The notes beneath the pieces were generated by a model, which was given only the letters and a program-made list of their open reading frames with translations, was not told where the DNA came from and did not search any database. A program made the position numbers and the translations under genes. This document shows positions 1 to 58,467 of a stretch of 64,000 nt of DNA, in pieces. The stretch is from Eutreptiella sp. 'Long Island Sound 2002' (taxonomy: Eukaryota > Protista > Euglenida). Every line of letters begins with the position of its first letter. Position 1 is the stretch's first letter. The DNA is taken from the NCBI GenBank assembly GCA_964036045.1, contig OZ038379.1:1798001-1862000 (forward strand), given 5' to 3'.

Positions 1-1425
1 GGAGGAGTGGCGGAGATGGCATGTGTATTCAAACAAGTTAAAATGGGCTTTGTGGGTATGCACACAGAGAACACCTGCTGCAAATGTGAACGACGGGGAA
101 GAACATTCCAAAAAGGTGGAGTAAAACTCAAAAGAGTAGGTGTGGTGCAGGGGGGGAGTGGGCATGGGAAGGAATGTGTACATGGTGCAATGAATTTGGG
201 TATTTTGCTATGATGGGTACTTGCTCGAATGAAATGCTGCCTGTTCGGGGGGGGGGGGGGGCTGAGCTGCATGGCTGGATGTGGCATGTGTGACCCAATG
301 GCAAATGAGTCAGCAACGTCGGGCGCATGCAGGACAACAAGGCGCTCTACAAATGCACGTCCTGGTATGCATACCGGGGGGGGGGGGGATTGGTGTGGGC
401 ATATTTAGGTAAGGCAAAATTCGGTGAGGGGAAAATTTGGTCCAAATCTCAAATACCGTGGAAAAATGTGTACAAATTTTCCAAATAATGGGCAATGCAG
501 GAATGTAACTGGAGACCTGCAGTTTGGAGGTGTAGTACTTCTACAATTCAGCTATCTGCTTTCCCTGCAACTCACCTGTGAAACAGGTTTCAAAGTGAAA
601 ACATGATGTCTCCAACAATTCAGACCCTCGGAACCTTGTAATGGAGAGAAAATGTGCATAGATCTGGTAAAGGCAAGAACGTGGCTTCGGTCCTTAAATA
701 CCACAGCAAAATGTGGTACAATTTTGCTGTGCCACATTTCGCCGTTCCGACTTTCGCACCTGCCGAATCCCCCCCCCCCCCCGGTATGCAGCAATGGTCA
801 GCAGTTCGTTTCGCATACTCATATCCAACAAATCAGGGATAGTTATATGTACAATCTGTCAGGCTGGTCCTAAGCTTCATCTTCGCTTGGCCGTGTTTTG
901 TCAGAGAACTCTAGCCTACATGTTACTGCACAAAGGGTGGGTCGACCATCTGGTTTGCACGGTAAGCTTGCCTGGCGCTGACTTCATTGGCCAGCTCGCT
1001 GTTATCCCCCTTTCGTCACGGGAAAGGCAAATCGAGAGAATGCGGGGAGAGTGGAGAGGGAAAAGAAAAGAAAACCTGACAGCAAATAAACTTTGCAGAA
1101 ACAGCATCAACACTTGACAGCATGTGCGGGGACAAGATCTTGGGGCTTCATCCATGGCTAAGCCTCCTTTGCAGGGTTCTTGTAGAAGAGACCGAATCCC
1201 CCATGGCATCACCAACACCGGGCGGTTGATACGACCCCAACGAGGAGGACCACTGCATGGAGGCGGACTGCGCGGATTTCCTGCGCTGGGCAGCCTGAAC
1301 TTTCAAGCATCTACAGGACATGTGCTAAAGCGCGCAGTATACCGCAATGCCTTTCCTTTGTATGGGGTATCAGGATCGCCACAGTCTGTACCTACCAGTG
1401 CACGAAGTGCGTGAAGAGATGATGA

Positions 1426-3603
1426 TCAACCACAGCTCGGACGATGTAGCGCCGGACCCACCGCCTTCCAATCGAAGCTGCCGGTCGACACACCTGCCTC
1501 GCTGTCCGAGGGCCTACCACCCTGCACACACGCTTGCCTCGCTGTCCCTGAATCAGCGCTGCCACGGCTACATCCCTGTCCCCACACCTGCCTCCTTGTC
1601 CCCACGTTGTTCAGCACGCCAGCGGGGCCAGCGCTGCCGGGGCGATTGCTGTGGGGGCTGCTACTCCTGCTGCCACCAGACGTAGCAGATGGAGCGGAAA
1701 ATGCCACATGCTCGACATATGCATTTTGAAGGCGCAATGCCATATCCCTGAAGCTGAGGCCCTTGTCTAATGTGAGGTGCGCGCCGCACGATGTGTACAA
1801 CGCCCTGTCGTCAGCTGAAGTGTTGGCGGATCTGATGCAGCAAAGCCCCCCGAAGCCGAGGGCGGTCAGCTGCTTCAAGAGGTCCGTGCCGTACACCGTC
1901 GTTGGCCCGTACTCCATGTTTTGATCCACGATGACGACATCGGCCAGTGCCATGGCGGCCTCCACAAAGCCCTCCAAATCGTCTTTGGTTGCTCCAAAAA
2001 TATCTACACAACTTCCCTGAAAATGACGCTTGAGGTTGACGTCCAATAGCCTTCGAGCAAGTTTGCTGTCATCGGCACAGCAGAAGCGAAGGTTCCAGGG
2101 ACGTTGCTGTATCACGGACGGCACGGGCTGCTCTGGCACGACAGTGCTTGAAACACTTATGCGATGGTCATCGCAGACTCGGACAGGCATAGAGGCCGCA
2201 AAAACCACTGTGTCGTCACCCTCTGCTTGAATTAGTGAGGCTACGGTACCAAGCCTTTTAGCAATCATGAATATGTGGCTCAGCCCAAGGCCATCAGACA
2301 GCCCACTGGGACTCAGCTCATGATGGTTGCCTTCGGAGGCTTGCCGGCAAAACTCGGGTGTAATCCGAGGCTTGGCTGGATCTGCACGATTCGTCACCCG
2401 GAACGTAATTGTATGTTCGGCAGTGCTGGGCTTGGGCTGCAGATCAATGTGCAGGGAAACGGCAGGCCCTTCAGGATGTCCATGTCGAAGCGCGTTGACA
2501 ATCACATTTTCCAACATCAATGCACACAGGCTCTCATCAATCCATACGTACTGGTCAGGGAATGTGACATGCGGCATTTGCCGGCCGGAGATCAGACCTT
2601 CAACAAATGTTGCAAGGTGCACCGATGTCAGCTGCGGGATGTACCCAGTGGAAAACACTCGGATCAGAACAAGCCTATTCTTGCACCATTTGATTCCACT
2701 CTGCAGCCGCTCTAAGGCCCGCTGCAAGAGCTCATCTGTGGTGTCATCCTCCAGGAACGTTTCAATGCAACCTTTTACCTCCGCCATGATGTTCTTGAGG
2801 TGGTGGTTGAGGATGCTGTCGGATTCAATATCTGCTTGTGCGTGCCTCAGTTCGGCTTCCAATGCTTGTGTCTCTCTTTGTCTGCTCTCTGCCAAGAACT
2901 GCTTTCGCTGTGCAATGCTGTGCAAAACGTTCATCCACAACACCATTAAAGGGATAAAAAGGGCAGGAATAGCGGGGAAAAGCTTTGGATACAAGTAGAT
3001 TGCCACAACGCCCCCCACGGGGAGCGCACAATTGGTCAGCAGGATCCATCGCGTATACAGAAAGCCATTCAGCATCAAACATTGCACCAGAACGCACAGG
3101 ATCGGACGGGAAAAGAGAAAGATGGCTGCCGCTGTGTGACGTTCAACCGCTGCTATGGCCGTATCCAACAGATCTGAGCTTATGCCCTCAAGAGATTGGC
3201 GAACGTTGACCTCCATAACATTCGATTCTGTGACCAAGTGCGCCATTTTGCCCACAACCCCCACAATGATAGCCATGCAAATTATATGTGATGCATAGGG
3301 CGAGACTGCATTCCACCATCGGATCAGGACCAGCGACGCCATGAGGAGAATACACATGGGAATCGCGGACAAAAGAGTGACCCATGAGACCCCAGATGAG
3401 CTGGAAACAAATCTAAACTGCCAGCCCTCCAAGGCTGCCAGGCAGACGAAGGCAAACACGGTCTTGGCCGCATTTGACCGGCTCATCTGGAAACCCCTCT
3501 CCTTCAACGGACATGAAAACCGGAATTCATTCCAAACAGAGAGCAGCTTGGTAGCACCCCAGGTCACTTCCGTGGGGTTCTCATTGCTGTTGGCAGTCGA
3601 CAT
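1426..3603 (-). CDS. Membrane-bound hybrid sensor histidine kinase with C-terminal receiver domain (~725 aa, intronless)
   Basis: About 6 hydrophobic segments, H-box ILNHHLKN (2791-2808), N-box LENVIVNALRHG, G2-like DGLGL, then receiver motifs ADD...VIVDQN...SAN...DKG. The start is placed at ATG 3603 (M51 of the 775-aa ORF) because a pyrimidine tract and TAG lie 8 nt upstream. Confidence 0.9.
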   Translation of the reverse strand: MSTANSNENPTEVTWGATKLLSVWNEFRFSCPLKERGFQMSRSNAAKTVFAFVCLAALEGWQFRFVSSSSGVSWVTLLSAIPMCILLMASLVLIRWWNAVSPYASHIICMAIIVGVVGKMAHLVTESNVMEVNVRQSLEGISSDLLDTAIAAVERHTAAAIFLFSRPILCVLVQCLMLNGFLYTRWILLTNCALPVGGVVAIYLYPKLFPAIPALFIPLMVLWMNVLHSIAQRKQFLAESRQRETQALEAELRHAQADIESDSILNHHLKNIMAEVKGCIETFLEDDTTDELLQRALERLQSGIKWCKNRLVLIRVFSTGYIPQLTSVHLATFVEGLISGRQMPHVTFPDQYVWIDESLCALMLENVIVNALRHGHPEGPAVSLHIDLQPKPSTAEHTITFRVTNRADPAKPRITPEFCRQASEGNHHELSPSGLSDGLGLSHIFMIAKRLGTVASLIQAEGDDTVVFAASMPVRVCDDHRISVSSTVVPEQPVPSVIQQRPWNLRFCCADDSKLARRLLDVNLKRHFQGSCVDIFGATKDDLEGFVEAAMALADVVIVDQNMEYGPTTVYGTDLLKQLTALGFGGLCCIRSANTSADDRALYTSCGAHLTLDKGLSFRDMALRLQNAYVEHVAFSAPSATSGGSRSSSPHSNRPGSAGPAGVLNNVGTRRQVWGQGCSRGSADSGTARQACVQGGRPSDSEAGVSTGSFDWKAVGPALHRPSCG

Positions 3604-3610
3604 AATTCCA

Positions 3611-3645
3611 CTAAGCAATGAAAATGACAAGACAACCTGTGCAAA
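3611..3645 (-). promoter_or_regulatory. Putative 3' (trans-)splice acceptor upstream of the kinase ATG
   Basis: The minus strand reads ttgtcttgtcattttcattgcttAG|tggaattATG. The spliced-leader interpretation is inferred from the euglenid context. Confidence 0.45.
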
Positions 3646-3883
3646 GCAGTCTGTATGACAGAAAGAAAATTTGGACTGGTTTAGGATGAGGGTCACCGAT
3701 CTGGTGTAAGCAGTAAGGTTCCGTATCCCTGTTTTAGGGTGTGCGTTGAACATGGGTTGGGGCAGCAGGCAGCATCAGCAGCAGTGCTTCGGTTGCCGCC
3801 CAAGTTTCGATGGATGATACGCTGACATCTGATGTTGATGACCAAAAAGTGAGCCACAACTGAAAGCTGAACATGGCTTATTG

Positions 3884-3930
3884 GCAGCAGGCAGCAGCAG
3901 CAGCAGCAGCCCTAGCAGCAGCAGCAGCAG
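3884..3930. repeat. (GCA)n microsatellite
   Basis: gcagcaggcagcagcagcagcagcagccctagcagcagcagcagcag. Confidence 0.85.
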
Positions 3931-4154
3931 TGCACCGCTGGACCATGGGACTCATTCAGGCCAATCTCTCCCCCGAGATGTGCTGCATGTGCACAATGCA
4001 CTGCGTAGAGGTGCACAGTGTACAGTGTGTAGAGTGTACTGTGCAACATGCACAGCGTGAGCGCAAGTGCAGCGTGCGTAATGTGCAGTGTTTAGGGTGC
4101 AGAGCACAGCTTGCAACGGCAACATGGCTAGTGCACAACGCAACAAAAAAAGCA

Positions 4155-4469
4155 TCAATGGTGCAAAGATAGGAGACCACTTGAGCTTTCCAACAAACCT
4201 ACAACTTCCCTCATTTCACAGATACAACCATCCTCTGGGGAAGGTGAATGATATTGTCCAAGTGCGGAAATGAAGCCCATCCCAGGACTGGGGTGGAAGA
4301 AAATCTTTTGGCGGGATACGTTCCCCAGCCCCGCTGTGCCTTGGAAGGCCTCGATCTGTGCAATGGTCACGTTGCCTTCGGCGATCTCCTCCTGGGCCTG
4401 GAGTAACCATTCTGTTGCTCGGTCATCGAACCCCTTGGACTTCCTGAGCGTCTCACCCAAATATACCAC
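4155..4469 (-). pseudogene. Possible retrotransposon gag-like relic
   Basis: The helical-looking segment DDRATEWLLQAQEEIAEGNVTIAQIEAF resembles capsid-type gag helices. No other domain supports the call. Confidence 0.25.
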
Positions 4470-5983
4470 ATCCCCAATGCAGAAGAAGCATCAAAAACCT
4501 GTTGTCAAACAACCCTCAGTACCACAGAGTATGGTTGTCTAGTACAACCAGACACCCAAATTGTTGCACTGCGTGCGCACTGCACTAAGGACGCTAATAA
4601 GGGCCCTGTGCTAAGGGACCCATTTCTGGAACTGTACAATGCGCATTTGTTGCTCCTCGGATGCTGGCACGCCTCCAGCTCCGCTGCCAACTTCCATGAC
4701 CAGTTCAGTCGCCTCAACTGCTGTTCAGCTACCTCCCCTTTCCCCTGTTGGTGTCTTGCTAGATTAGCAAGCCTCACGTTCTCATTTGATTTGGATTGCT
4801 ATTTCACGAAGCGGGGATCTTTCCCCATTAACCCCCGCATTTTCCACCATTTCTTCCTGTTGCTGGGCACTTTTTGGGTACATTACTGGGTGCTTTACCG
4901 GCCAACCCAGTCAGACGCTTCTCAGGCCTGGATGCTAGCCTTCGACGGTGGTCAACAAAAACAATTGTGACATGGAGATAACTGTTCACGCAGTGCGCAC
5001 AGTGCACACACTGCAAAGTTTTATGTGTGCGGGAGTTTGCCTTGTACCCCAAAACCTAAATGTTCGCGGGTGTGTGCCCACACTTGGTGTCGGCACAAGC
5101 AGGGCCACTGGGAGCCCACCCCCTACAGCCTCTACCCGTCTGTCCCCAAAATGAGCGCCCAACCGGTCTCTCTTTTGCAACAAAACGGTAGTGACAATCT
5201 CTTGATGGCCAGCAACGAGCCTCTTGCTTCACCTGCTGGCGTGTCGGCTCTGTTATGAGCGTAAGCAGGCTTCTCTTTGAGGGCTTGTGTATCTGCAAAG
5301 ATCTTCAGAAGAGATACACGCACATTTTTCAAGGATCAAGGCAGGGTTGATCTGCATCATGCAACGTGTCTGCGGCAAATGGTGTAATTTGTGCATGATG
5401 GTTGATGTACGCAATGTGCCAGCAACCTGGGTTCACTTTTTTCTCACCCGTGGCAATGTCTACTTTTCTGACTTTTTTTTGGGGGGGGCTGACTCGAAGT
5501 GTTCACGAGTACTCAAGATAGTTCTTGGAAATTGGGCGGCTCAAGTATATGATCCACTCGGGGGGGGGGGGGGGCTGGAAAAAAATTCTCCTCCCCCACA
5601 GTGTCACTTTTTCATGGAACATGCTACCCACCCCCCTAGTGGGGAGAAAAATTATTTTTCACATAACTATGCACTATATTCCTGGATGTTTGCTGAGAAT
5701 TCTTGTTCATTCGCCTTTGGTCCCATACCAACCTTACCCAACCCATACCCATGCTCAAGGGGAATCCTTGCACTGCGTGCTACTTTTAGACTAGATTCCG
5801 CCTAAAGATCCCAAAGGCCCTTCCAAACGCCCTTTAAATCAGGCAACCCCAAACACCCAAGCCTTGGGGGTGCAAAGTAGCTGAGGGGTGTAAAAATTGC
5901 AATCTGACTTGGAAATCTTTTTTCATTTTTTTCACTGAAAACTGTTGCATCCAAATTTGATGGGTTTTTCTCCACTGAAACTT

Positions 5984-6125: not shown

Positions 6126-9100
6126 AACATCAACATCGCACGTAAGCTGTCTAACACTTAGGCCACGCAAATTACCCGACCCCCAGCCCCCCACCCCTTG
6201 GCTACGAGGGGCCATGCTGGCCCAGGGGGGATACACCTAAAAATGGGGTATAAATTTTTACCCAGGGGACCCCTTGCACCTGGTGAGGGGAAATGAAGTC
6301 TTTTATATTTCAAAAATGGTATTCTCATGTAACCAGATCCAAGGGAGTGCCACACAATAACCATGCATGCATATTGAGAGAGACTGCACTTGCAGCCACT
6401 TTTTGTAATACATCAACCATTTCGAGTGTACCACACATATGGAACATGCACCACTGCCCTATATGACAAGAAACACGATGTCACAGCCCTGACAATCACT
6501 GACACGGGGTGTGAGGGTGCAAAAACTGTCAACCGACAGTCACTGAAATCCATCATCACAAATGAGGTCTCTATTTGCCTATGTAGGGACCCCTGGACGA
6601 AATTTCTGCCAGATCTTGCAAAACCCTGAAAATGCAGAATGTATTCTTCAAAAACAACAAACTTGAACGAAATTTCTGCCAGCTCAACTAAAACAGAAAA
6701 ACGCAGTATCAAAATGGCAACAACACCTACAGAGACAGCGCAAGACGAAGGAACCGGGTTTATAAATAAACTACACACAATACACAGGCCAGAACAGACA
6801 GAACAGACAATCTACCGCCTCTTGTGCAAGCCAATAGCCCTCTGCTTGGAAGGCTTATATCCACCCTTCCCTGCATTGGCTTGTGGTGCCTATTGGGCAT
6901 CCACATCAGGGTTGGAAGCAGGAGCAGCAGCACTGGATGCCTGTGTCAGTTGGGAGGGGGTAAAATGGTCTGCAAAGGCATTGCCTTGTTGGACGCGGGT
7001 CCTACTAAAGGCCTGGGGGGTGGACTGTGTGGGAGTGCCATTGGCACTGGGCTTTGGTTTTTTTTCCTTAGCTGGTGTGCCTTCAGCTCCCCACCCCCCA
7101 TACCTGATTCCTTGGCCGAGGGCGCTTCTGCATGTCAACTCCCTCTTCCTCTTGTGAGGGGGGCTCCTCTTCTTGCTCTACATACCTCATTCCGGAACAA
7201 TCCATTGGAAGCCCGTCTTCCGGGTCATCACAGGCCCTATCCCAGTTAATGGGCGCCACAGAGTCGCAGTTTGACACACCGGCCCTCTGATTAGTACCAA
7301 AGGCCTCTGGCACTGCTTTGTCTTCAGACAAATACGCTACAGTAATGTTAACTGGGAACACACTCTGCACACACAGTGCTACGGCAAACATTGGTTGCTG
7401 TGTGGCAACCATTATTCATGTACTGTTCTGCTTCACTAAATTCATATGACATAGCAAAAAACACGCAATTTCAACAGGAAGGGGACTTGACAGTGTACGC
7501 TGTGTAAACGACATATAGCAGGGCAGACAGGAATTGAACTGGTGCAAACTGCAAAGTGCTAGTATTGTCCCATGCTGTAGACTGCAGAGGCCTTAGGCAG
7601 GTTGTAGACACAAACATCAGCATGGAAAAACTCCTCAGAATAGGCAACCTTCAAATTACCAATACATGCTCGCACATCTGCAGTTTCCCCTGTTACAGCA
7701 ATTAGAACACCATTCAGCAAAAAGTCCTCCATCCCAACCACTCGCCGTTGGCACCAACCCTCCGGCCCCTGCACCCACACCTGGCTCAGCCGACCCGAAC
7801 CCCCGCAGCGGCTCAGAGGCGCCTCGGGGTAGGGCCCAGCGCATCCGTCCCCCTCGGCTACGGCGGTATGCCCACCGGTGTGGTTATTTCGGGCGGCGTC
7901 AGGGTGGCTTCCGCGCCTGGCCCCTGCCCTTCGGTCCTCCTCCCCGCCTTGGGTGCGAAGTCTGCCAGCTCCACGCTCTCGTTCCCCTCTGTGTCCCCCT
8001 CGGCCATCCTGGTCCCCCACAGCTCGCCCTGGACCTTGTTGCCCTTGCCGCCGGTGACGGTTTCCTCTCGACCACCACCACGGCTGCTATGCAAAACCTC
8101 GGCAGTCTCAACTGCCTTCGTTTTTTCTCGGCCTTCTTCCGTGCCCCGTCGCCCCAGGTACAGGTAGCCCGCCGCCGTGCCGGTGACGTAGAGGCCCCAA
8201 ACTCGGGTCTGCGCCCCTCACGGCACTGGGGTCCCAGGCGACGTGCCGGGACTTGAGCCTCAACTGTATCCTGAGGGCCATGCAATTCGCAACAAAACTC
8301 ATAACTTAGAAAAACCTGTCACCAAAAAGCAAAGTTCCCACAAGCCCTCCAAGAGAACAACAGTTCAGCGAGAGCCAAACTGTCGTGAACAATGACAGTG
8401 GCTGACAAGTAAACATGTGCAGACCATACGGACTCTAGGTACGAGTAATAAATCGATTATAACATCAGGGGGGTGGTGTTCGCAGTAAATCCTCATAGCG
8501 CGCTTGGACGCGATCGGAGTTCAGCCCACAAACCTGACCTTCAGTGCACGAATTTAATACCAGCGGACCCGAATGTGCTTGGTTGAAATGAGGTAGTCGG
8601 CTGGACAAATATTAGCCTTCCCTTTGGGCTTCGCCTTTGGCTTTGGCTTCGCAGGAGGTTGGGGGGCTAGTTGCTCAGCTGGGGTCTTAGGCACATCAGA
8701 TTGCTAAGTTCCATTTGTACGTGCCTCATCATTGGTCTAGTCCGTGGGCTCACAAATGACATTTTCACGCTCATCAGTTGCAGATATAGCTTGAAAGCAG
8801 CAAAAGACACACACGGGCACTGTTGATGTGAGAAAATCGGGGACACTATATTGTAGAACACAGACAATACTACAGATCGGATAGAAACCAAATTCAAGAT
8901 TGCTAGTAGCTGTACAAAAGCGATGGGACAGTGCTACAGACTGGCGAATTCACAACAAAGGCGGGTCTGGACGAAATTTAGTCCTGCTTCCACGATGATA
9001 TCAAATAGTACAATGAAATCAAGAAATCCGAAAGCTGGACGAAAATTAGCCCAACTTTGAGGCATAACAACAAATAACACATGCAATTTAATCCCAACCC

Positions 9101-47700: not shown

Positions 47701-49239
47701 ACCGGTACAATGTGCCCTAGTTCGTGGGCCACGCCTCCCCTCGCCACTCATGGGTATGCACGGTGCGGACCCTGTCCTGCAAGACCACTTGGAGGCAGCG
47801 TAGCCCCTCCTCCATCGCCACGGAATCCGGTGTGCCCCCGTTCCGCACTCGGGAGTACTGTAGGCCGAGGCAGTGGACGCGCTCCAACCAATTCGGGAGC
47901 GCCCACCAAGCCTCGAGGATCTTGCGCAGGGGCGGCCCCGACCTAGGGTCGGGCCATAACGACCAGCGGAGGACCGACCGCAGGGAGCCCAGTGCCGCTT
48001 CATCCATCGGCACATCCGTCCTGCCAACCAGATCCTGGGGCGGGGTTGCCCCGGCTTCATTTCCGCCAGCTCCGATGACTAGCTTCTCTGGCGTCGTGCC
48101 ACTGGAGTTAACGATCTCGGCAGTCCCCGCCTGCGTCGCACCCTGGGCTCCTGGACTGCCTCCTCGTGCCTCGGGGTTCTGCACCTTCTGGCACTTGCCT
48201 AACAGCAGTTTCATGCAGGCCACTCGGTACTGGTCCGGCCGCTTGACTGAGATCTCAGGCTTGTCCCCTCTCCAGCTCACCAAGGATGAACACCAGGTCT
48301 AGCACCTTCAATGGTGTCCCGGTGTAGAGCTTACTGCTCCCGGACGTCATGCACCGCAGGCACCACCTGTTGGACCCTATGCTAGATCCGAGCCACCCAA
48401 CCGTGGCTGTGATTTATCCTATTCCACTCCAAGTTGGCCAGGTCCAATACCTGCTTCTTGCCTACATGGTCTGGCCATTTTCCGTAGTGTCCAGTGGAAA
48501 ATTTGATCGAAGCGTCCAATCCATGTGGCGCACCCTCCATCTCGATTATTAAAATCGACTCGGCGTGAACAGAAATTGGTATGCATGCTGCATAAATGCA
48601 CAAACGGCAGCAGAAACAGGGAATGCATTCAACTTGAGTTTCAACGGAAACTACAGTTTTTATGTGCGCGGGCTCCACTGCCCCACTGCAGTTGCTTTAG
48701 TAGTCCGGTGGCCACTCACTCCCCTCCCGCTCCCTGACTGCCCTATTGTCGTTCTCCTGCCCGAGGCACAAACGCCCCCCCCCCCTCACCCTCCTCCTAC
48801 TCCTCCTCCTCCCTTTTACCACCCTCCTCCCTCTCGTCCTCCTCCTCCTCCCGTTGGTCATTGTCCACATGGACGACGTTCCTCGGGGCTGCTCCTGATT
48901 ATGCTGGACTTTGGACCAAGTCATTCTTCGCTGCTGCCACACATTGCCTTGCCAGGGGGCCTAAGAAGCAAAGGCAAAAGACTTGCAGACCCACAGGCCC
49001 GGGATGTGCACCACCATGTTGCATGTTACAGATATTGGTTCGCTGGTTGCACACTACTTCACACAACTGCACACATACGCGAAGAAACCTGCACCTTGTG
49101 GCACCTCTGACATGAATACTTGGTGCCACAAATGTTTGCGCCACAAAATGACCACCGTACGGGAACAAGAAAAAAAAGACTTAGGGAGGGGGTGGCACGT
49201 GAGGACGATGGAAGCGGGGCGGCTAGCACACCTGAAGTA

Positions 49240-50001: not shown

Positions 50002-52212
50002 AACGGCTTCTTCATGGTGAACGCCCAACCGTCCCGCGTGCCATCCGTCTTGGTGGCTCGCATGACCTGGGTGTGGGCCAACTTCGTCAACGCCCCACCG
50101 TGTGGGGAGTGCAGATTCGTGAGGCACCCGAGGCATTGTTGAAGTGCATCCCATCGGCACCCTCAGGTGCAACCGGACCGAGGCGGCGCATCCATACATC
50201 ACCACCCATCCCGAGAGCCGAAACAGGATAAGAGGGTCTGAAGGGTGAACAAACAAGAAGAGGAGAGATGATAATTCTTCTGGGAGAATGGAGAAACATA
50301 GGTTTAGGTTTTGTATATTTATTTATCCTACTACGCACGGACATGCACCGAGTTGCAAGCGAGAACTTTGCTTATTTCTGATTGAAGCTTTTTGTTGAAA
50401 TGCGGGCCTACAAATGCAAGCTGTCACGAAGTGCCAAGAGGCACATTTCCATAACCTCTTTGTTCTAAGCAGTCATGTGTCCGTGGGCACCAGATGTCGA
50501 GTATGATTGTTGCTTGACGGAACCCTATGTAAGTGACACATACCCGAAATGACGACTATCAAGCGAATGGCACAGCAAGGCAACCCAAAACTTTCCCCGA
50601 TCCATGCAACAATATGTAAAAACACAGATAAACATCAATAAACATCAATACACAGCGATTCTCTCCCAAAAACGGGCGTTTTTTCGAAAATAAACGTATA
50701 AACATGTTCATTTTCCATTTGACTAGCGACTAGAATAGCAGTTAATTAAAGCCTGCCCACTCGGCAGGCGGTGGGGCACCCATGGCCCCCCCGCAGCCGG
50801 GGGCACAGACAAACTTCCTTCTTGAGGCCATCCATTCCCCGCCCTCACTATAAGTGCACGGGGGCAGCCGGCAAAGGAGCCATCGCGTTGATGTCCCCTA
50901 GGTCGGGCTCCAGGCACAAGAGGGCCTGGAGGACCTCCTCCGCCACCCGGGTCCAGAGGGCCCAGAGGCGGTTGACGTGCCCCCCATCCCCAACACTGCA
51001 TGCCAACGCTATTGCAAGGGGTCCACCAGCCAAGATCCAAGCCATGCCTATTCGTCCCGTGGTACAGGAGCCATGGGGCGCAGCCGGACAAACTCCAGCA
51101 CCCGCTGTCACGCCTCCCACAGGTGCCGGTCGAAGCAGCCCACTGATGGCCGGGGATATCCCCCGAAGGGAGGGGACAGACCCGCAGCAACAGCGGCGCG
51201 TGCCAACCAGCAAACCATCATTGCGGGAGGGTTGCTACATCCCCAGCCCAAGATGCGAGCAGAGGGGGGGCCGGCCCGCCAGCGCCGCAAGCTCCGCGTC
51301 GGAGACGCCGCGCAAGGAGTGGGGCCAGCACCCCAGGGGGGACTTAGTGGAGGTGGTCTAGCAAGAATTTGAGGACCCCGCCAACCCCTTGGGGCACCAC
51401 ATATTCAAGGGCGCGCTCCCAGGCCGCGTGGTTCAGCTCCGGCTGGGAAGGGACCCGATAGATGGCCTGCACGTGGAGGATGTTGGCCCATGTGCCAAGG
51501 CCAACCAAGACATGGCACCACCGCACGGAGTGCCACAGCTCTGACGCCGTGTCGCTGTCAAGAGCCCCGGCACGGGGCTTCTCCTCCCGCACAGGGTGCC
51601 CTTGGAGAACCAGGACTCCAATGCCGCCCAGGGGGCAATCCCATATGCCCCCGCCCCGGGATTGCAGCGGAGCGCCCCAAAAGGCCTGCCAACCTGCCTC
51701 CCGCGCCCACGGTGCCATGACGCGCTGCCCTATCGCCGTGAGGTGTGTCTCTGGCAAGAGCAGGACACCCGCCTCCTGAGCAAAGACGGTATCCAAGTGC
51801 GCGCGGAGCGACGTCACATTGGCCACCGCAATGCGTAGCGGTCCCTGGGTGCGGGTGGATGTCTCCACACCGCCAGCCACCAGCACCCCACACACCTCGC
51901 GCGCACTGCGCCGGCCCGCGGGGGATTGGGGGGACACACAACAGCAATTTTGGGGCTTTGGGGGGCCCATGGCTCGGGCTACATGGGCCTAGCGGCCACT
52001 ACGTGGGTCCCCACGGGTGCTCAAATACCCGTATTGTCACCATATGATCACCCAAACCCATCATTGGGGCAACGGAAGGGTTGGATTTTCAAGGAAAAAA
52101 TCAGGTGCCACTAATTAGCCCATCCAGCGCGAAAACCGGCAAGGACCCATAGGGGGCGTCAACCAGGGGTACCCGGAGTTTGGACCAGGTACCCCCGCCA
52201 TGGGTTAGGGGG

Positions 52213-54525
52213 TCAATAGACAAGAAAAAAGTTGTTCAGGACCCAGGTCCAAATCCACACACAGTGGCCGCAACAGGCAAAGAAGCTTTGACGCCCCCCG
52301 ACCCCTCCCAGCCCCCCAAAATGGGGTACCTGGTTTACCACAGGCAAGAAGCAAAAAGCAAATCTGGCAGACAGACATCTCGACACCGAACGCAACATTG
52401 CATGCTGGATCTTTAACCGGGTGGATGCCTTCAGCGGAACAAGCTGGGCAGACGCCACCTCACTGTCTGTCACTAACAGCAAACAATCCCAATGCAAATG
52501 TAAGGCGAGCCACACCGCCCAGCATAACCCCGCCAACTCCGCCGTCTGTTGCGTATGACGCGCTATGGGCACCACCCAAGATAGGGCTCCCATCTGCGGC
52601 GAAAACCCCCCCACCCTGTACGAAAACAGGTCCCACGCCGCGTCCACGCACCAGCACCATGGCCTCAGGCGTTGAAAAAGTTCAGGTACAGGGGAGCGGG
52701 AAAGCGAAACAAACTGCCGCGCCCTCTCCCAAGGCAAAGCTCTATAAGGTTGAGCACACAAGCACAAAGTAGAGGCCAACACATGCAGGATCTTCACAGG
52801 CACGTTCCTGTCATGGTCGCCCCACCGGACCCAACAATACGCGCCCGCCAGCAAGGGCACGGAGGTCAACCGCGGCCGGATGTGCCACTGGAGGAAGCCC
52901 AGCAATTTCTCCATCAGCTTGGGCCCTGGCATGGGGGATACCGCCAACCTTAACCACACAGCCAAAATCTGCAACCACGCGCGTCTGTGGCTATAAACCA
53001 TACGGTGCTGTAAGTCCAAAAACTTTCCCAGCACAAACAAATGTTGCACCGGTTCCAAAGTGGACTTATCAGAGACGATAAACTCATTCTCAACCAGCAA
53101 ACGCACACACTCCTGGGTGGTGCCGTGTAGCAAGGGACTATCGGCCGAAACTAGGACGAAGTCGTCCAAGTAATGCAGTAACTCCACACTCCGTGGGATG
53201 TGTAGTCGCAACAAGTCCCCCAGGATGCGCTGGCAGAGGTATGGCGAAAACTTCCAGCCAAAAGGCAATCGCGTCGCCCCCACAACCGGTCCTCCCAGGC
53301 GTATCCTAGCCCGGAAAGCCGTGTCTACGCCCTCCGGCAGGACAAAACTCCAAAAGGCGTTGGTCAGGTCTATATGTGTGGCATATAGCCGCTGCCCGGG
53401 CGGCGTCTGGTTTAACAGTCGGCAAATACCCTCCCAGGAGGGTAAGGCAAAATGGGGGGGATCCGGGGACTCCTCATTTAACCCCACGCAAGACAGTATA
53501 AAGCTGACCTTGCGCGACGACTTAGGGATAATGAAAGGAAAAACCGACGGTGTAGTACCGTCAGGGAGCTCCCTGAAAATGCCCGGATGCTCAACAGCGG
53601 CAAAAAACTGACCGACCAACCCCGACACCCGACCCGCCCCGCCCTGCGGATCTCGCTCCACGTCGTAACCCGCCGCACACCCCAAAAAGTCGGCCGGCAC
53701 GACCTCCCTCCACAAACTATCCGGGATCCGGTACGACCCCACGGCCCCCAGCCCGCGCTGGACCACCTCCGGGACCACCGCCGCGAGCGACGGCTTGGGC
53801 GACGTATTCAAGTGAAGCAACGCCTCCCATGCCGGTTCGGCAAACTCGCACGGTGCCAGACAAATCACATCCAGTGCAAAACCCAGGGCGAAGTCCTCAG
53901 CCACCCGGAAAACCCTATCCACAAACAACTCAATCCGCTGCAAAAGTAAAGGCCCTGGCGCTGACAGCTTGCGCTGTAGCCAGCACGCCGACCCCGACAA
54001 CAGGGCGAGCACCCGGGCATACAGGGGCAGTGCCATCAGGAACCGCGGGACAACCGGCGGATCGCCGCCGTCCCTAGGGAACTCCGGGCCCGGTAGGCCG
54101 GGGGGGGAGCCGCCCACCAACCCATCCCCCCCCCCCACCCCCAGGCCCTCTACTCCTGCCAAAACCACCGTCCCATGCGTCCGCAACTCCTCCACCGTCG
54201 CGGACGTCTCCCCAGGCGGCCGCCAGGCATATGAGTTACCCAACCCCCACGGGGGGTGCCCCACATCCACCGCCTGCTCCGACGGCCGATCCCCTGCCAC
54301 CGCCAACCGCCACCGCCATGACCACCGTCCGCCACCCTCGACCAACTTGCGCAACGCCCATAATCTCGCCGTGTCATCATCCGCGGCCCGGGCGGGGGCG
54401 GAGTGCGCGGCGTTAGACGCGTCGCAGCCGACAGCCACGGCGCCCAACCGCCCACGCGCAGACGACCCCGCCCCCTCCACGGACCTCGCGGGTGGCACGG
54501 GCACATCATGAAGATCGGGCGCCAA
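52213..54525 (-). CDS. Reverse transcriptase-RNase H (DIRS-type)
   Basis: Motifs FPFIIPK, HIDLTNAFWS, RLPFGWKFSP, YLDD (53161-53172), FVLGKFLD; RNase H VDAA, QQTAEL, LVTDSE. There is no stop inside the element: the last ~40 codons are host repeat. Confidence 0.92.
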   Translation of the reverse strand: MAPDLHDVPVPPARSVEGAGSSARGRLGAVAVGCDASNAAHSAPARAADDDTARLWALRKLVEGGGRWSWRWRLAVAGDRPSEQAVDVGHPPWGLGNSYAWRPPGETSATVEELRTHGTVVLAGVEGLGVGGGDGLVGGSPPGLPGPEFPRDGGDPPVVPRFLMALPLYARVLALLSGSACWLQRKLSAPGPLLLQRIELFVDRVFRVAEDFALGFALDVICLAPCEFAEPAWEALLHLNTSPKPSLAAVVPEVVQRGLGAVGSYRIPDSLWREVVPADFLGCAAGYDVERDPQGGAGRVSGLVGQFFAAVEHPGIFRELPDGTTPSVFPFIIPKSSRKVSFILSCVGLNEESPDPPHFALPSWEGICRLLNQTPPGQRLYATHIDLTNAFWSFVLPEGVDTAFRARIRLGGPVVGATRLPFGWKFSPYLCQRILGDLLRLHIPRSVELLHYLDDFVLVSADSPLLHGTTQECVRLLVENEFIVSDKSTLEPVQHLFVLGKFLDLQHRMVYSHRRAWLQILAVWLRLAVSPMPGPKLMEKLLGFLQWHIRPRLTSVPLLAGAYCWVRWGDHDRNVPVKILHVLASTLCLCAQPYRALPWERARQFVSLSRSPVPELFQRLRPWCWCVDAAWDLFSYRVGGFSPQMGALSWVVPIARHTQQTAELAGLCWAVWLALHLHWDCLLLVTDSEVASAQLVPLKASTRLKIQHAMLRSVSRCLSARFAFCFLPVVNQVPHFGGLGGVGGRQSFFACCGHCVWIWTWVLNNFFLVY

Positions 54526-54585
54526 CGCCCCCCCCCCCCCGCTCCCACCAGAGGTGGCGGAAATCCCACGACTGGGGGCAAAACC

Positions 54586-56175
54586 CTAACCAACCGCGGG
54601 CCACTTACGGGGCGGACACTCCGTAACCTCGCGACCCCGCCTCCTGGGTACAAGGCGCTGCGGCCTAACGGTCGGGGTAACCGCATCGGAGCCACCCACC
54701 CGGGACGGGGAAGGCACACGGTACTGCCGGACAGGGGGAGGGGGGGGCGCGTACTGCTGTCGCCGTGATCCCGGATCCTGCGGTCGTTTGCGTGACCCCA
54801 GCCCCCCAGCACCGGGCGCGCCAACCCTGAAGGCATCAACCGGAGCAGCGACGCTCCCCATGTTCGGCACACACTCCTTAACTCTACGAACTCCCGATCC
54901 ATCTCCAACGTCTTCATCCGAGTCAGAGTCGGACAGGACGATGACTTCAGGGGGCAGCCCAGGAGAAGCGGACTGGGCGCAGGCCGGGGAAGGGGAAGTT
55001 AGTCGTGGCTCCGATGGAGGTCCTGGGACGGCTGGGGATGGGCACGGCTGGGGGCCGTCGACGGCAGCGGCACCGACGCTATGCTCTTCCCGAACGTCCT
55101 CCACCAGAGTACTTCCAGTAGGCCCAAGAAGAGGCGGTGGGCTCGGGTGCGGCGGGTCCATGGGAGGCTCCGCAAACCGTGAGAGGTCGTACATAGCCAT
55201 ACCCCACAGAGCCGCAGGTAGCACCGTACCGCGTGGGCCCAGACCCACAGCCTCGTTAACATGCGGCAGCACCAGATCGCCCACCACCTCCGGATCTCGA
55301 AACCCCGGGGCGTAACCCATGGCGGTACGCAAGCCAGCCCACCGCCCCCAGAAGAGGAAGTACTGTGCGGCGGGCTTGCGTACCCAGCATGCCGCGGAAC
55401 CTCCCCTTCTGAGGGCATGCCAGCGAGCATCAGCCCACTGGGTGTCGCGGAGCAGGCGGCCGATGGTGTCCTCGAGGAAGGGGGCCCCTCCCTCGAAAAC
55501 GGGCTCGTCAGGCTGCTTCCCCTTAGCTTGGCAGTAGACTCGGAGGAATTCCATCCAGGATCTTGCGTAAGCTGCGGCCGGTCGACAGACCCATCCGGGC
55601 TCTCCCACCTTGGTGCTGTAGAACCAGAGGCCCTCCTTGCGGTCAAGGTCACAACACCGGATGGAGGCGGCCTCTCCAACCCGGAGCCACATCGTCCACG
55701 ACAGGGCCGCCAGCGCCGCGACCGCCCGATCGTCCGGCGCGGTGGCCGCAATCCAGACGTGCACAAAGGCTCGAGGCGACACGTACGCCTGCGGGCCGGG
55801 GCCTCTTCCCGACTTTGCAATGCGCCAGTGGAGGGCCGCCACAATCCAGGGGACCAATGCCAAATCCTCCGCAGCGCGGACGGCAGACGCCAGTCCGCGC
55901 AACCCGGATGCAGAGTAGCCATCGGCTGCACGCTCCGCCATGCAGAGGGAGAGGATTTCTGGCAGGGGCCTAGCCGGGATGCATGCTTCGAACTCCGCCA
56001 GCTGGTGGATAGCCGACCCATACCGCTGCCTTGTGCGCTGCTTCCAGGATTGCATGGCCGCCACTCGAGGGTAGGCCCGCTCGTCCGATTTCGCCAGTTG
56101 CTCCCAAGCGGATGCCAAGCCTGCAAAGCTGGCAACAAACCCGGACGCAACCTCCGGGGCAACCGCCGCGGGCAC
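54586..56175 (-). CDS. Tyrosine recombinase
   Basis: The full catalytic set is present: LRVGE (R), STK (K), WHALRR (H-x-x-R), GRW (W), AMGY (Y). The true start is uncertain: GTG 56175, the first ATG (MQSWK), or readthrough from gag. Confidence 0.92.
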   Translation of the reverse strand: MPAAVAPEVASGFVASFAGLASAWEQLAKSDERAYPRVAAMQSWKQRTRQRYGSAIHQLAEFEACIPARPLPEILSLCMAERAADGYSASGLRGLASAVRAAEDLALVPWIVAALHWRIAKSGRGPGPQAYVSPRAFVHVWIAATAPDDRAVAALAALSWTMWLRVGEAASIRCCDLDRKEGLWFYSTKVGEPGWVCRPAAAYARSWMEFLRVYCQAKGKQPDEPVFEGGAPFLEDTIGRLLRDTQWADARWHALRRGGSAACWVRKPAAQYFLFWGRWAGLRTAMGYAPGFRDPEVVGDLVLPHVNEAVGLGPRGTVLPAALWGMAMYDLSRFAEPPMDPPHPSPPPLLGPTGSTLVEDVREEHSVGAAAVDGPQPCPSPAVPGPPSEPRLTSPSPACAQSASPGLPPEVIVLSDSDSDEDVGDGSGVRRVKECVPNMGSVAAPVDAFRVGAPGAGGLGSRKRPQDPGSRRQQYAPPPPPVRQYRVPSPSRVGGSDAVTPTVRPQRLVPRRRGREVTECPPRKWPAVG

Positions 56176-56235
56176 TGCCCGCGAGCAGAAGGCCGCCCGC
56201 CGACCGCCCCACCCGCCCCCAGCAGGGTCGTCCAG

Positions 56236-56910
56236 TCAGGCCCAGTGTGGGCACTGAAAGTGCCAGTGCCTGGGGGCAGTGGTCTCGGGGCTGTGGGCCT
56301 TGCAGCGGCGGCATTCCCCCGGCGCAGGGGCGGACACAGGGACTTTCCGTCCCGAGGCATTAACCCATTTGAGGACGCCTCCCTCACGCACGAACCGAAC
56401 CCCTCGCCACCGAAACGAATCCGTCGGGTGGGCGGAGGCCTGAGACCACTGGAGGGCATCCGACTGCTTGCCCTCGGCTGATTCGGCATCTTCGCGGGCT
56501 CGTTGTCGTCCTTCATATGCCTTGTGGCTGTCCCATAGGGTGTCCCAGACACGGTTCGCCAGAACCTCCCCGGGAGTCAGGTCCTCGGTGCCCTCCATGT
56601 CCGCTCTAGGCACCTGCTGCACGTACTGCTCCAGGGACTCCGCGGTTTGCTTCATCCACCCGGCCAGGCGCTCACGGCCACGGAACTCCGCCAAGGCCTC
56701 CGTCGTGAGCCGTGGCGTCTTGGGTGAGGCCAGCTCCGCCTTCTCGAGCCTCCTGCGAAGGCCCTCCAATTCTGCTGCCTGTTGCCGGACCAAGGCCTCC
56801 AGGTCGGGATTCGTCTGCGAAGAAGGGGACGGTCCAACCGACGGCTCCACGCCGCGATTGTCCGAATCCTTCGGGGGGCTGGCCGACTTGTTGGGGGTGA
56901 AAAGGTTCAT
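56236..56910 (-). CDS. gag-like protein (224 aa): coiled coil plus C-terminal CCHC knuckle
   Basis: ATG at 56910 follows a pyrimidine-rich leader. LEALVRQQAAELEGLRRRLEKAEL is a coiled coil; CRRC-x11-H-x4-C lies at the C-terminus. Confidence 0.7.
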   Translation of the reverse strand: MNLFTPNKSASPPKDSDNRGVEPSVGPSPSSQTNPDLEALVRQQAAELEGLRRRLEKAELASPKTPRLTTEALAEFRGRERLAGWMKQTAESLEQYVQQVPRADMEGTEDLTPGEVLANRVWDTLWDSHKAYEGRQRAREDAESAEGKQSDALQWSQASAHPTDSFRWRGVRFVREGGVLKWVNASGRKVPVSAPAPGECRRCKAHSPETTAPRHWHFQCPHWA

Positions 56911-58467
56911 GGTACAAAAAACAGAAAGTAAAAACACACTGCCTGAGAGGGGAAGAGGGGGAGGTAAACCAACGGTGACAAGCACCGTGAGGTTAGGGGG
57001 GGGAGGGGGGGGGTCAAAATTGAAAAATTCATTAGAGATCATTTTCTGTCCTAACATGATGATTTTACAAGGGGTTAGACGTCTGATACCATATCTTGGG
57101 CTATGCTACGGAAACGGCCCCAAAGGGGGGGGGGGTATATGACGCCCGTGCCTGCACTTGATGTAACAACCCTCTTCGAGGTGATTTTGCTGGATGATGG
57201 CAACGAGTATGAAGGACAACCACATAACGTTTGAGTAAGAAACTCAACAGTGGAGGCCAGGGGTTGGGTGCTGTAAATGTAGGTGGCAAGTTCCAAAAAC
57301 TGTCAAAAATGGCCAAAAAGTGCCGCAGTGACGCAGTGGCAGTTTGTGGTGAATTGAACATATAGGCAGTCAGCACCATGAGGCAGCCCCCAGCAAATCA
57401 TAGAGGCTTGTTACAAAAAGGCAGAAAGAAATCCGGATGTGTCCGGTACAGCCAATGCAACCTAATCTACCCAATGTGCTGTCCGTTGTGCATTGGGTCT
57501 CAATTCTTTTCTGTGGTGAAATGAGGTATGAGCAGATTTTCTGGTGTGCCACTGTTGCCGTATGTCAGCTTGTGTTCGTGAGCCGGAGGTACGGAAGGTG
57601 CTTCTACTGCCGTCCGCTCCCATGCCGGCGCCGGCAGGCTTCAAATCAAGTCTGTCCCAAGACGTTGAAAGTCGGAGGGTGCTCTCCACATCTGATGTGT
57701 GAAATGTAGCACAGGGCCAGGGGATTCCGGATCATCAGGTGTGACACATCAGTGGTGCACAGCATCCAGGAAGCGGCGGCGTGGGGCGGCGCAAAGGTGA
57801 GGTGGATGTGCTGGTTGACAGCTCTGTTGTAACGCCGGCAACTGCAAGAATCGCAGCGCAGACTTCCGGGTGGTCACTCCCAGCTTTGCCTGTAGCTGTT
57901 CCGTCCATTCCTCACTCCCCTGGGCTCTCTTGACTTTGGCTAGCCGCTGTACCGCTTGTGGATAATGGTGATGCCGGATGAGTGACTCATACACACTTGC
58001 TCCAGTTTTGTGGAGGGAACCCTCCGTTTGACTGTGGACGGCCGATCTTATGCGACAACAGCAACTCTGCTGTTCGCCTTTAACCAGGTCTGAGTCCGTT
58101 CCTGTGTTGACCAGACTCGTGAGCAGACAAGGGGTGGGGGTCAGGAGGTGCCCAGCAAGGCAAAACAAGCAAAGCCACTACGCACACTCGGCACCAAGCG
58201 AATTCGGCGAGTTGTTGTATGTACAGGAACTACAAATGGCTGAAAGATATATACCGAGTGTGGAGCCTCTGGAAGGCGGACCCTGTTTGACAGGGCTGTC
58301 CACCGGGAGCTACCGGGAGCAATTCAAGGGGTGCGGGGGGTTTGACACATAGGAGTTGGGGGAGGTGGATAGCACGTGGTTGGAGTGCGATTGTGCCAAC
58401 AGATTTGACGCGCACACCGACAGGCATTGGCGTGCAAGTTCGTGGAAATACTTGGTGCAGGACATGA

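Follow-up and report, generated by a model that had tools for sequence, protein, structure and literature searches.

The window analysed here, a 64,000-nt stretch of DNA from Eutreptiella sp. 'Long Island Sound 2002' (GCA_964036045.1, OZ038379.1, positions 1,798,001-1,862,000, forward strand), harbours a tyrosine-recombinase retrotransposon at 52333-56991. From a comparison with its relatives we propose that this element derives from a family of DIRS-order retrotransposons with split direct repeats, and that a two-tier hairpin at the joint between the terminal repeats B and A is probably their recombination (att-like) site, with the crossover at AAC. What was read directly from the copies is the repeat anatomy, the presence of the junction inside full-length elements, the position of the ends, the bias of the target and the covariation of the pairable junction. 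The element class, split repeats and a triplet rule at the junctions are already known. For a compact covarying hairpin across the split-repeat junction with a fixed AAC crossover, no description was found in the literature searched, the reach of which does not extend to the key older reviews.

With the window element as query, at least 41 scored matches of 90-98% identity were obtained in the window's own genome (2.28 Gb; 267 first-look candidates). Almost all matches of this family, termed F1, span only positions 50-4660 of the query, and the first 50 bases match apart from the rest, several hundred bases outward. In full copies, as the comparison of loci showed, the terminal 50 bp of the window element are separated from its body by ~1.1 kb. 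In these copies the 5'-terminal ~70 bp (repeat A) are repeated right after the 50 bp (repeat B), and B follows again ~396 bp further on. The mapping of A and B covered 30+12 loci. Read along the coding strand, a complete F1 element (L002 together with L031, ~6,120 bp) consists of A1, a gag-like open reading frame (ORF), the tyrosine recombinase (YR), pol, ORF4, B1 (~57 bp), A2 (~70 bp), a unique segment X (~274 bp) and B2. The repeats of F1 are therefore split and direct (A1-body-B1-A2-X-B2), B1 adjoins A2, and this B1-A2 junction was found in 25 F1 copies. The arrangement A1 ... B1-A2-B2 is the split-direct-repeat plan of Ngaro, PAT and VIPER/TATE elements (PMC9210276, PMC4157794, PMC6681497).

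Compared with full copies, the window copy lacks ~1,460 bp, comprising the end of pol, ORF4, the B1-A2 junction and X. Its body stops at 52381 and B begins at 52382, and the two overlap by a 2-nt microhomology at 52381-52382. A 26-mer spanning this deletion joint occurs once in the genome, and contigs from public sequencing runs proceed at this point into the missing sequence. Since full copies carry split repeats and the deletion joint is unique, the element at 52333-56991 is a dead, unique deletion derivative of a ~6.1-kb family and does not represent a repeat-less kind of element. The initial annotation, which had been made from the window alone, had described it as repeat-less and had itself named repeats in other copies as an observation that would speak against its proposal; the split direct repeats of F1 are such an observation.

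The same annotation had placed the complete hairpin exclusively on a circular form of the element. This view has to be abandoned, because the B1-A2 junction is present in linear chromosomal DNA. Sixteen internal B1-A2 junctions are identical (...CCTGTGGTAAA C TCACGGTGCTTGTCACCGTTGGTTTACC...), and the exact 24-mer with a single C across the junction occurs 49 times in the genome, compared with no occurrence of a joined version with CC (25-mer). An extra C at the 5' end was seen only in the window copy, in L023 and in part in L030. The palindrome that had been assembled from the two ends is right in that they form an imperfect hairpin. Its dimensions (36 bp, 8- and 6-bp stems, 1x2 internal loop) are not, since the real junction has one C (GGTAAAC-TC-ACGGTG...). 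The actual F1 junction is palindromic over 35 nt; its stems measure 7 and 6 bp and are separated by a 2x2 internal loop. The right end of the window element by itself also folds (z = -4 to -5).

Protein searches led to four further lineages, F2, F2b, F6 and F7, whose loci were taken from the ENA assembly of the same species (100% matches to the window's genome). All four show the split-repeat plan and a two-tier hairpin exactly at B1-A2, their stem sequences differ, and their B repeats end with AAAC. With a slash at the B1-A2 boundary, the F1 reference reads GGTAAAC/TC ACGGTG CTTGT CACCGT TG GTTTACC (L004:7249-7283). F2 reads GGCAAAC/CC TTGTTTG TGCT CAAACAA TT GTTTGCC (L051:9118-9153; YR and pol each 40% identical to F1) and F2b reads GGCAAAC/CCTT GTTTTA TACT TAAAAC TTAT GTTTGCC (L053:10717-10754; 37% and 42%). 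The more distant lineages are F6, with CCAAAAC/CGA AGTTTT CCATA AAAACT GAG GTTTTGG (L052:14397-14433; YR 28%, pol about 30%), and F7, with GTAAAAC/GACT GTTAGC TTT GCTAAC TGGG GTTTTAT (L054:10071-10107; 26% and 32%). The F6 junction lies within an apparently complete element of 5,076 bp (L052:9647-14722).

The architecture common to these junctions starts with an outer stem of 7 bp whose end is AAC. Inside it follow a symmetric internal loop of 2-4 nt, an inner stem of 6-7 bp and a terminal loop of 3-5 nt. In the outer stem the final 7 nt of B (NNNNAAC) pair with a block GTTNNNN that lies ~22 nt into A, and AAC and GTT are invariant in all five lineages. In the F1/F2 alignment both sides have changed in 4 of the 12 counted pairs, and 96.7% of the cells are paired, in contrast to 31-48% with the partners slid. 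Compensatory stem changes among families, which had been suggested as a check, were thus found. Folding gave one and the same structure for all five junctions (z = -4.8 to -7.3); none of 200 shuffles reached an equally good fold. As judged from these alignments, the junction hairpin is conserved through compensating changes in five related families.

A chance palindrome of the ends of one family, devoid of function, is very improbable in view of these data. Within F1 there is indeed no significant excess of conservation, and loose AAC-hairpin-GTT motifs are expected about once per 100 kb by chance. Two such motifs with 6-bp stems occur in the window (8095-8130 and 48631-48666); they were judged to be chance occurrences and have no recombinase or reverse transcriptase gene nearby. 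The full two-tier structure, however, occurs at the same junction in five lineages with different sequences, none of the 200 shuffles reaches any of these folds, and we estimate a probability of ~2e-6 per anchored site. Chance is thereby effectively refuted.

The ends of the copies define the position of the crossover. On the forward strand the left end of the window element reads GGTTTACC (52332-52339) and the right end GGTAAACC-A-ACGGTG-ACAAG-CACCGT-GA-GGTT (56963-56994). On re-reading, these letters matched the initial annotation exactly, and its view that both ends are authentic is correct to within 1-3 nt. Unrelated flanks precede the start of about 25 F1 copies, which begin with CTCACGG at the equivalent of 56991; likewise, 19 copies stop with GGTAAAC, at the equivalent of 52333, and then pass into unrelated flanks. 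Beside the ends of the window element lie one extra C (52332, 56992) and AA (56993-56994). The three bases preceding TCACGG in 24 independent copies are AAC (10), ATC (7), GAC (2), ACC (2), GTC (1), CRC (1) and CCC (1). The 3' side of F1 is always GGTAAAC, and the base after it is unbiased. No target duplication beyond the AAC-like triplet was present in the 11 F1 copies with both flanks. Copies of F2, F2b, F6 and F7 end as flank-(AAC or AGC)/A and B-AAAC/flank, so that in each of the five lineages the copy ends put the crossover at AAC, on the inner edge of the outer stem. These sequences fit a crossover at AAC with a target C preceded by A-A or A-T (an A-W-C preference) and without target duplication. 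Since the left junction varies and the right one is constant, a single crossover position is suggested rather than a 6-8-bp overlap. The F1 ends agree with the 3-nt junction and target rule of DIRS1-like elements, which have AAC/GTT among their known triplets and leave no target duplication (PMC3266345, PMC7192593).

Three peculiar sets of copies were noted in this context. L008 (G000:C5:152089515-152097118) is a 5'-truncated F1 copy that starts inside the hairpin at CACCGTTGG; unlike in all other copies, a direct duplication of 9 bp (tgccatttg) lies on its two sides, which suggests an occasional recombinase-independent insertion. Two copies in unrelated surroundings, L010 and L024, begin alike at A position 52 (GGCAGTG...), immediately behind a polypyrimidine tract and CAG that F1, F2 and F2b have in common (YYYCAG/GCAGT). 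This start may reflect an RNA 5' end or a splice-acceptor-like signal. At L049:2745-10861 a 3.6-kb F2 derivative (gag and YR, no reverse transcriptase) forms a head-to-tail tandem array of at least 2.25 units with 99.8% identity. Its units are joined as ...CCTACAAAC/CCTTGTTTG..., which puts the junction at the AAC.

In the mechanism that we propose, the end-to-end junction would be stored inside the element in the form of the B-A joint, in keeping with how VIPER, Ngaro and PAT are modelled to replicate. The two-tier hairpin or palindrome at this joint would be the att-like site of the element, on whose structure the recombinase presumably acts. The recombinase would cross over at AAC, at the inner edge of the outer stem, into a target C that follows A-A or A-T, and would leave no duplication. 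The B-A junction is probably the place where the recombinase joins element and target.

Several points weigh against this proposal. No circle, single-stranded intermediate or recombinase activity has been seen. The five lineages all derive from a single genome, and two of them, F2 and F2b, are closely related. No special constraint on the F1 palindrome was detected, as the frequency of shared-variant sites does not differ significantly between the palindrome (0/35) and the rest of A and B (5/96). In 25 F1 junctions all differences within the palindrome are single-copy and uncompensated. F1 subfamilies at 83-88% identity have the same palindrome sequence, and a search for covariation within F1 that included subfamilies at 83-90% identity gave uncompensated singletons only. 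The recombinase had no match in Pfam or the PDB, and its single-sequence AlphaFold model is poor (predicted local distance difference test, pLDDT, 35). Contig-level read data confirm the internal junction and the window-specific deletion; the distinction of a circle junction from B1-A2 and the RNA ends are beyond their resolution. Contigs cannot reveal circles because the shared B-A stretch (~130 nt) exceeds the assembly word length. Finally, the crossover lies off the dyad centre, which is unusual for a classical duplex recombinase site, and the hairpin could serve reverse transcription instead. Three readings of its role may be considered, namely a folded single strand, a duplex site and reverse transcription; as the substrate of the recombinase, a duplex, a cruciform and a folded single strand are all conceivable.

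A folded single-stranded site would resemble those of integron attC and CTX-phage attP. The cDNA would then be or become a single-stranded circle on which B-A folds, one strand would be exchanged at AA^C, and replication would resolve the product. The data permit this route without demanding it, and we regard it as possible but doubtful. The junction has the geometry of a minimal attC: the outer stem carries AAC/GTT, and an unpaired spacer separates it from another short stem that is capped by a small loop. In all five lineages the crossover is at AAC on the inner edge of the outer stem and not at the dyad centre, the stem sequence is free to vary with pairing kept, and the variable left and constant right junctions suggest one crossover position. 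Integron integrases use G-W-T secondary sites, and the A-W-C target bias observed here mirrors them; the loose specification of targets is a further common feature. The premise from which the attC comparison started, a repeat-less element with a hairpin only on the circle, is however refuted. The likeness itself, as drawn in the initial annotation, holds for the AAC...GTT arms and for the crossover at AAC/GTT, as seen at the copy ends of five lineages. It fails at the four flanking positions, which depart from the consensus (beyond AAC/GTT there is no match to RYYYAAC/GTTRRRY). In addition, the stems are shorter than in attC and total only 13-14 bp, there are no extrahelical bases but only symmetric internal loops, and signals that would mark one strand, such as consistent G-T wobbles, are absent. 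The element is also a eukaryotic retroelement with an only distantly related YR. In favour of this route, single-stranded cDNA intermediates are known from DIRS-1 (PMC7192593). It is likewise no more than tentatively that we would extend this to a eukaryotic retrotransposon group with a compact attC-like hairpin attachment site, in which the ends of the single-stranded cDNA would be brought together via the 7-bp outer stem, and the recombinase would recognise the folded two-tier structure and exchange one strand at AA^C with a loosely defined A-W-C target.

An ordinary duplex site on a double-stranded circle, with the arms binding a recombinase dimer, is unlikely in our judgement. The covariation would then reflect co-evolution of the protein with its half-sites, as any palindromic protein site also gives 'compensatory' changes. 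The size of 35-38 bp with ~15-bp arms is that of loxP or FRT, and the standard DIRS model assumes a double-stranded circle that recombines at a 3-nt junction (PMC3266345, PMC7192593). Yet the crossover is 8-10 nt away from the dyad centre. Consequently, symmetric cleavages would be ~21 bp apart and not 6-8 bp. There is also no inverted repeat centred on AAC itself: a canonical duplex core at this position was rejected, the flanking 5-6-nt inverted repeat being too weak.

Alternatively, the hairpin may have a role in replication. It could be an RNA or cDNA structure at B1-A2 for priming of reverse transcription or template switching, or the 3'-terminal 7 nt could pair with the GTTNNNN block near the 5' end, so that a linear single-stranded cDNA would have its ends kept together for joining. 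In the transcript, B1-A2 is the only place with the complete hairpin; split-repeat models use this region to rebuild the ends (PMC6681497). A hairpin has also been proposed as the DIRS-1 primer (PMC7192593). Moreover, eight independent deletion derivatives from two families join a truncated body to the first bases of B. Seven belong to F1, namely L001 (the window copy, 52381/2), L004:~7360, L008:~6555, L014:~6727, L023:~5927, L025:~6590 and L026:~6785, and one to F2 (L048:~11352). Their right breakpoints lie at most ~12 nt from the first base of B, whereas the left breakpoints are spread over 1.4 kb. The shared right breakpoint suggests a template switch from a fixed point in replication. A replication role alone, however, leaves unexplained why the crossover has the same position in all lineages and why AAC/GTT is invariant. 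On its own we consider it rather improbable as the explanation of the hairpin; a dual role is possible.

The coding content is in line with a YR retrotransposon, as the initial annotation had called the element. The reverse transcriptase (RT) matches Pfam RVT_1 above the curated cut-off (E = 2.2e-12 in the window, 5.4e-14 in L009). The ORF at 54586-56175 encodes a tyrosine recombinase. The R-K-HxxR-(H/W)-Y motifs all occur in it and do not vary between families that are 40% identical, its language-model neighbours are Phage_integrase clusters (score 0.99), and a profile search returned 412 relatives, with weak PF00589 matches on some distant members. The order gag-like ORF, YR, RT/RNase H (RH) was seen in the window, L002, L004 and L009, and YR is followed by pol also in F2, F6 and F7. 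ORF4 (L009:6194-6862, 223 aa) overlaps pol at its end, has an intact frame in several full copies and is absent from the window copy; it matched no Pfam family and had only weak language-model neighbours. A methyltransferase-like domain was not detected in the ORFs of the element, and with ORF4 lacking a family match such a domain is likely absent. Protein searches for the element gave matches only in the assembly of the same species.

RT, tyrosine recombinase, the lack of a target duplication and an internal copy of the end-to-end junction are features of the DIRS order. The YR lies upstream of pol, whereas Ngaro elements have it downstream of RT/RH. The repeats are direct, unlike the inverted terminal repeats and complementary internal region of DIRS1-like elements. 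VIPER/TATE elements are defined by gag-YR-RT order and split direct repeats (PMC6681497, PMC9210276). Since the order gag-YR-RT/RH is combined here with split repeats and no detectable methyltransferase, the element matches the VIPER-like group (PMC6681497), a likeness within the DIRS order that is drawn from gene order and repeats.

The closest likeness is to VIPER/TATE and SIRE of trypanosomatids, which have the same order of gag-like ORF, YR and RT/RH and the same split direct repeats (5' A1, 3' B1-A2-B2); the missing methyltransferase domain in F1 is counted as a further likeness. In VIPER of T. cruzi, however, A and B measure 173 and 219 bp, much more than the ~70 and ~57 bp of F1. The Eutreptiella families also differ from VIPER/TATE in that A2 and B2 are separated by the unique X (274-520 bp). 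The A2-X-B2 module of F1 resembles SIRE, which consists of A2, a short unique piece and B2 (PMC6681497). No description of a junction hairpin in VIPER/TATE was found in the literature searched. Ngaro and PAT share split direct repeats, the internal B1-A2 copy of the end junction and recombinase insertion without target duplication, but their YR follows RT/RNase H. A methyltransferase domain is found in PAT, and a hydrolase ORF is frequent in Ngaro. DIRS1-like elements share an internal copy of the circle junction and a 3-nt junction/target motif, which is AAC/GTT in some species (PMC3266345), and they have a self-complementary circle junction and single-stranded cDNA intermediates (PMC7192593). 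Their long inverted terminal repeats with a complementary internal region contrast with the direct repeats and the compact two-tier hairpin of 35-38 nt found here.

The coding strand of the window element is the minus strand, on which all of the following features lie; its bounds (52333-56991) come from the family comparison. Repeat A1, the 5' terminal repeat of ~70 nt that full copies repeat as A2 right after B1, is at 56922-56991. It contains the 5'-end portion of the junction hairpin (56963-56991), in which 56983-56988 and 56972-56977 are the inner arms, 56978-56982 is the loop between them, and 56963-56969 serves as the 3' arm for the outer stem. The 3' terminal repeat B is at 52333-52382, with 50 of ~57 nt retained, and the 5' arm of the outer stem is supplied by its final 7 nt (52333-52339; GGTAAAC in coding orientation). 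Three ORFs are present. The first (56236-56910, ~225 aa) is gag-like by position only and matched no known family. The recombinase ORF (54586-56175) encodes 529 aa with the motifs LRVGE (R), K.GE.GW (K), HALRRGG (HxxR), GRW (W) and GYA (Y). The pol ORF (52383-54525) includes the RT domain at ~53065-53403; in full copies a weak RNase H-like match was found as well. The deletion has removed the C-terminus of pol, and the frame stays open through B into the flank, to 52213.

This F1 copy is inserted in a very abundant host repeat (window 51900-52267 and 56868-57235; L050:10160-10280), which exceeds the element 10-100 times in contig depth. Where the window has GGGGTACCT[element]AGGGG, a paralogue of the host repeat that is not interrupted reads GGGGTACCCAGGTGCGGGG. 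Because of this paralogue, the 'telomere-like GTTAGGG' of the right flank seems to be a by-product of the host repeat and not a telomeric target. A clean empty site was not recovered from contig-level read data, in which skips over the insertion are host-repeat paralogues. Public sequencing runs with the element include estuary metagenomes.

Two matches, G000:C24:2733131-2733512 and G000:C15:32903164-32903544, consist of A2-X-B2 only, without B1 (query 75-456), and may be solo SIRE-like A-X-B mini-elements. Two more families, P0013 (L043) and P0014 (L044), were left out of the hairpin tally, both for and against; L043 combines direct repeats with an inverted duplication, and L044 is disrupted. 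P0013 is very abundant, with 11,233 first-look candidates. At L043 (G000:C19:~41830000-41837100) two P0013 copies with 99.85% identity lie head to head as an inverted duplication; this locus has 153-bp direct repeats and (TTAGGG)2 directly after the 3' repeat.

For the window itself, these results mean that it holds an ordinary dead deletion derivative. For the families they matter, as integration of YR retrotransposons is still largely a model with respect to the site of the recombinase, the strand and the involvement of a circle. The families described here offer a short junction element with a defined, fixed crossover and covariation across five recently active families, of which intact copies exist, such as the 5,076-bp F6 element. 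The choice between a duplex circle and a folded single strand becomes a direct question for oligonucleotide substrates, and a search pattern is gained for the junctions of VIPER, TATE, SIRE, Ngaro and PAT elements elsewhere. If the attC-like reading were true, no eukaryotic element would have provided a folded-DNA recombination site before this one, and the single-stranded intermediates of DIRS-1 would be accounted for.

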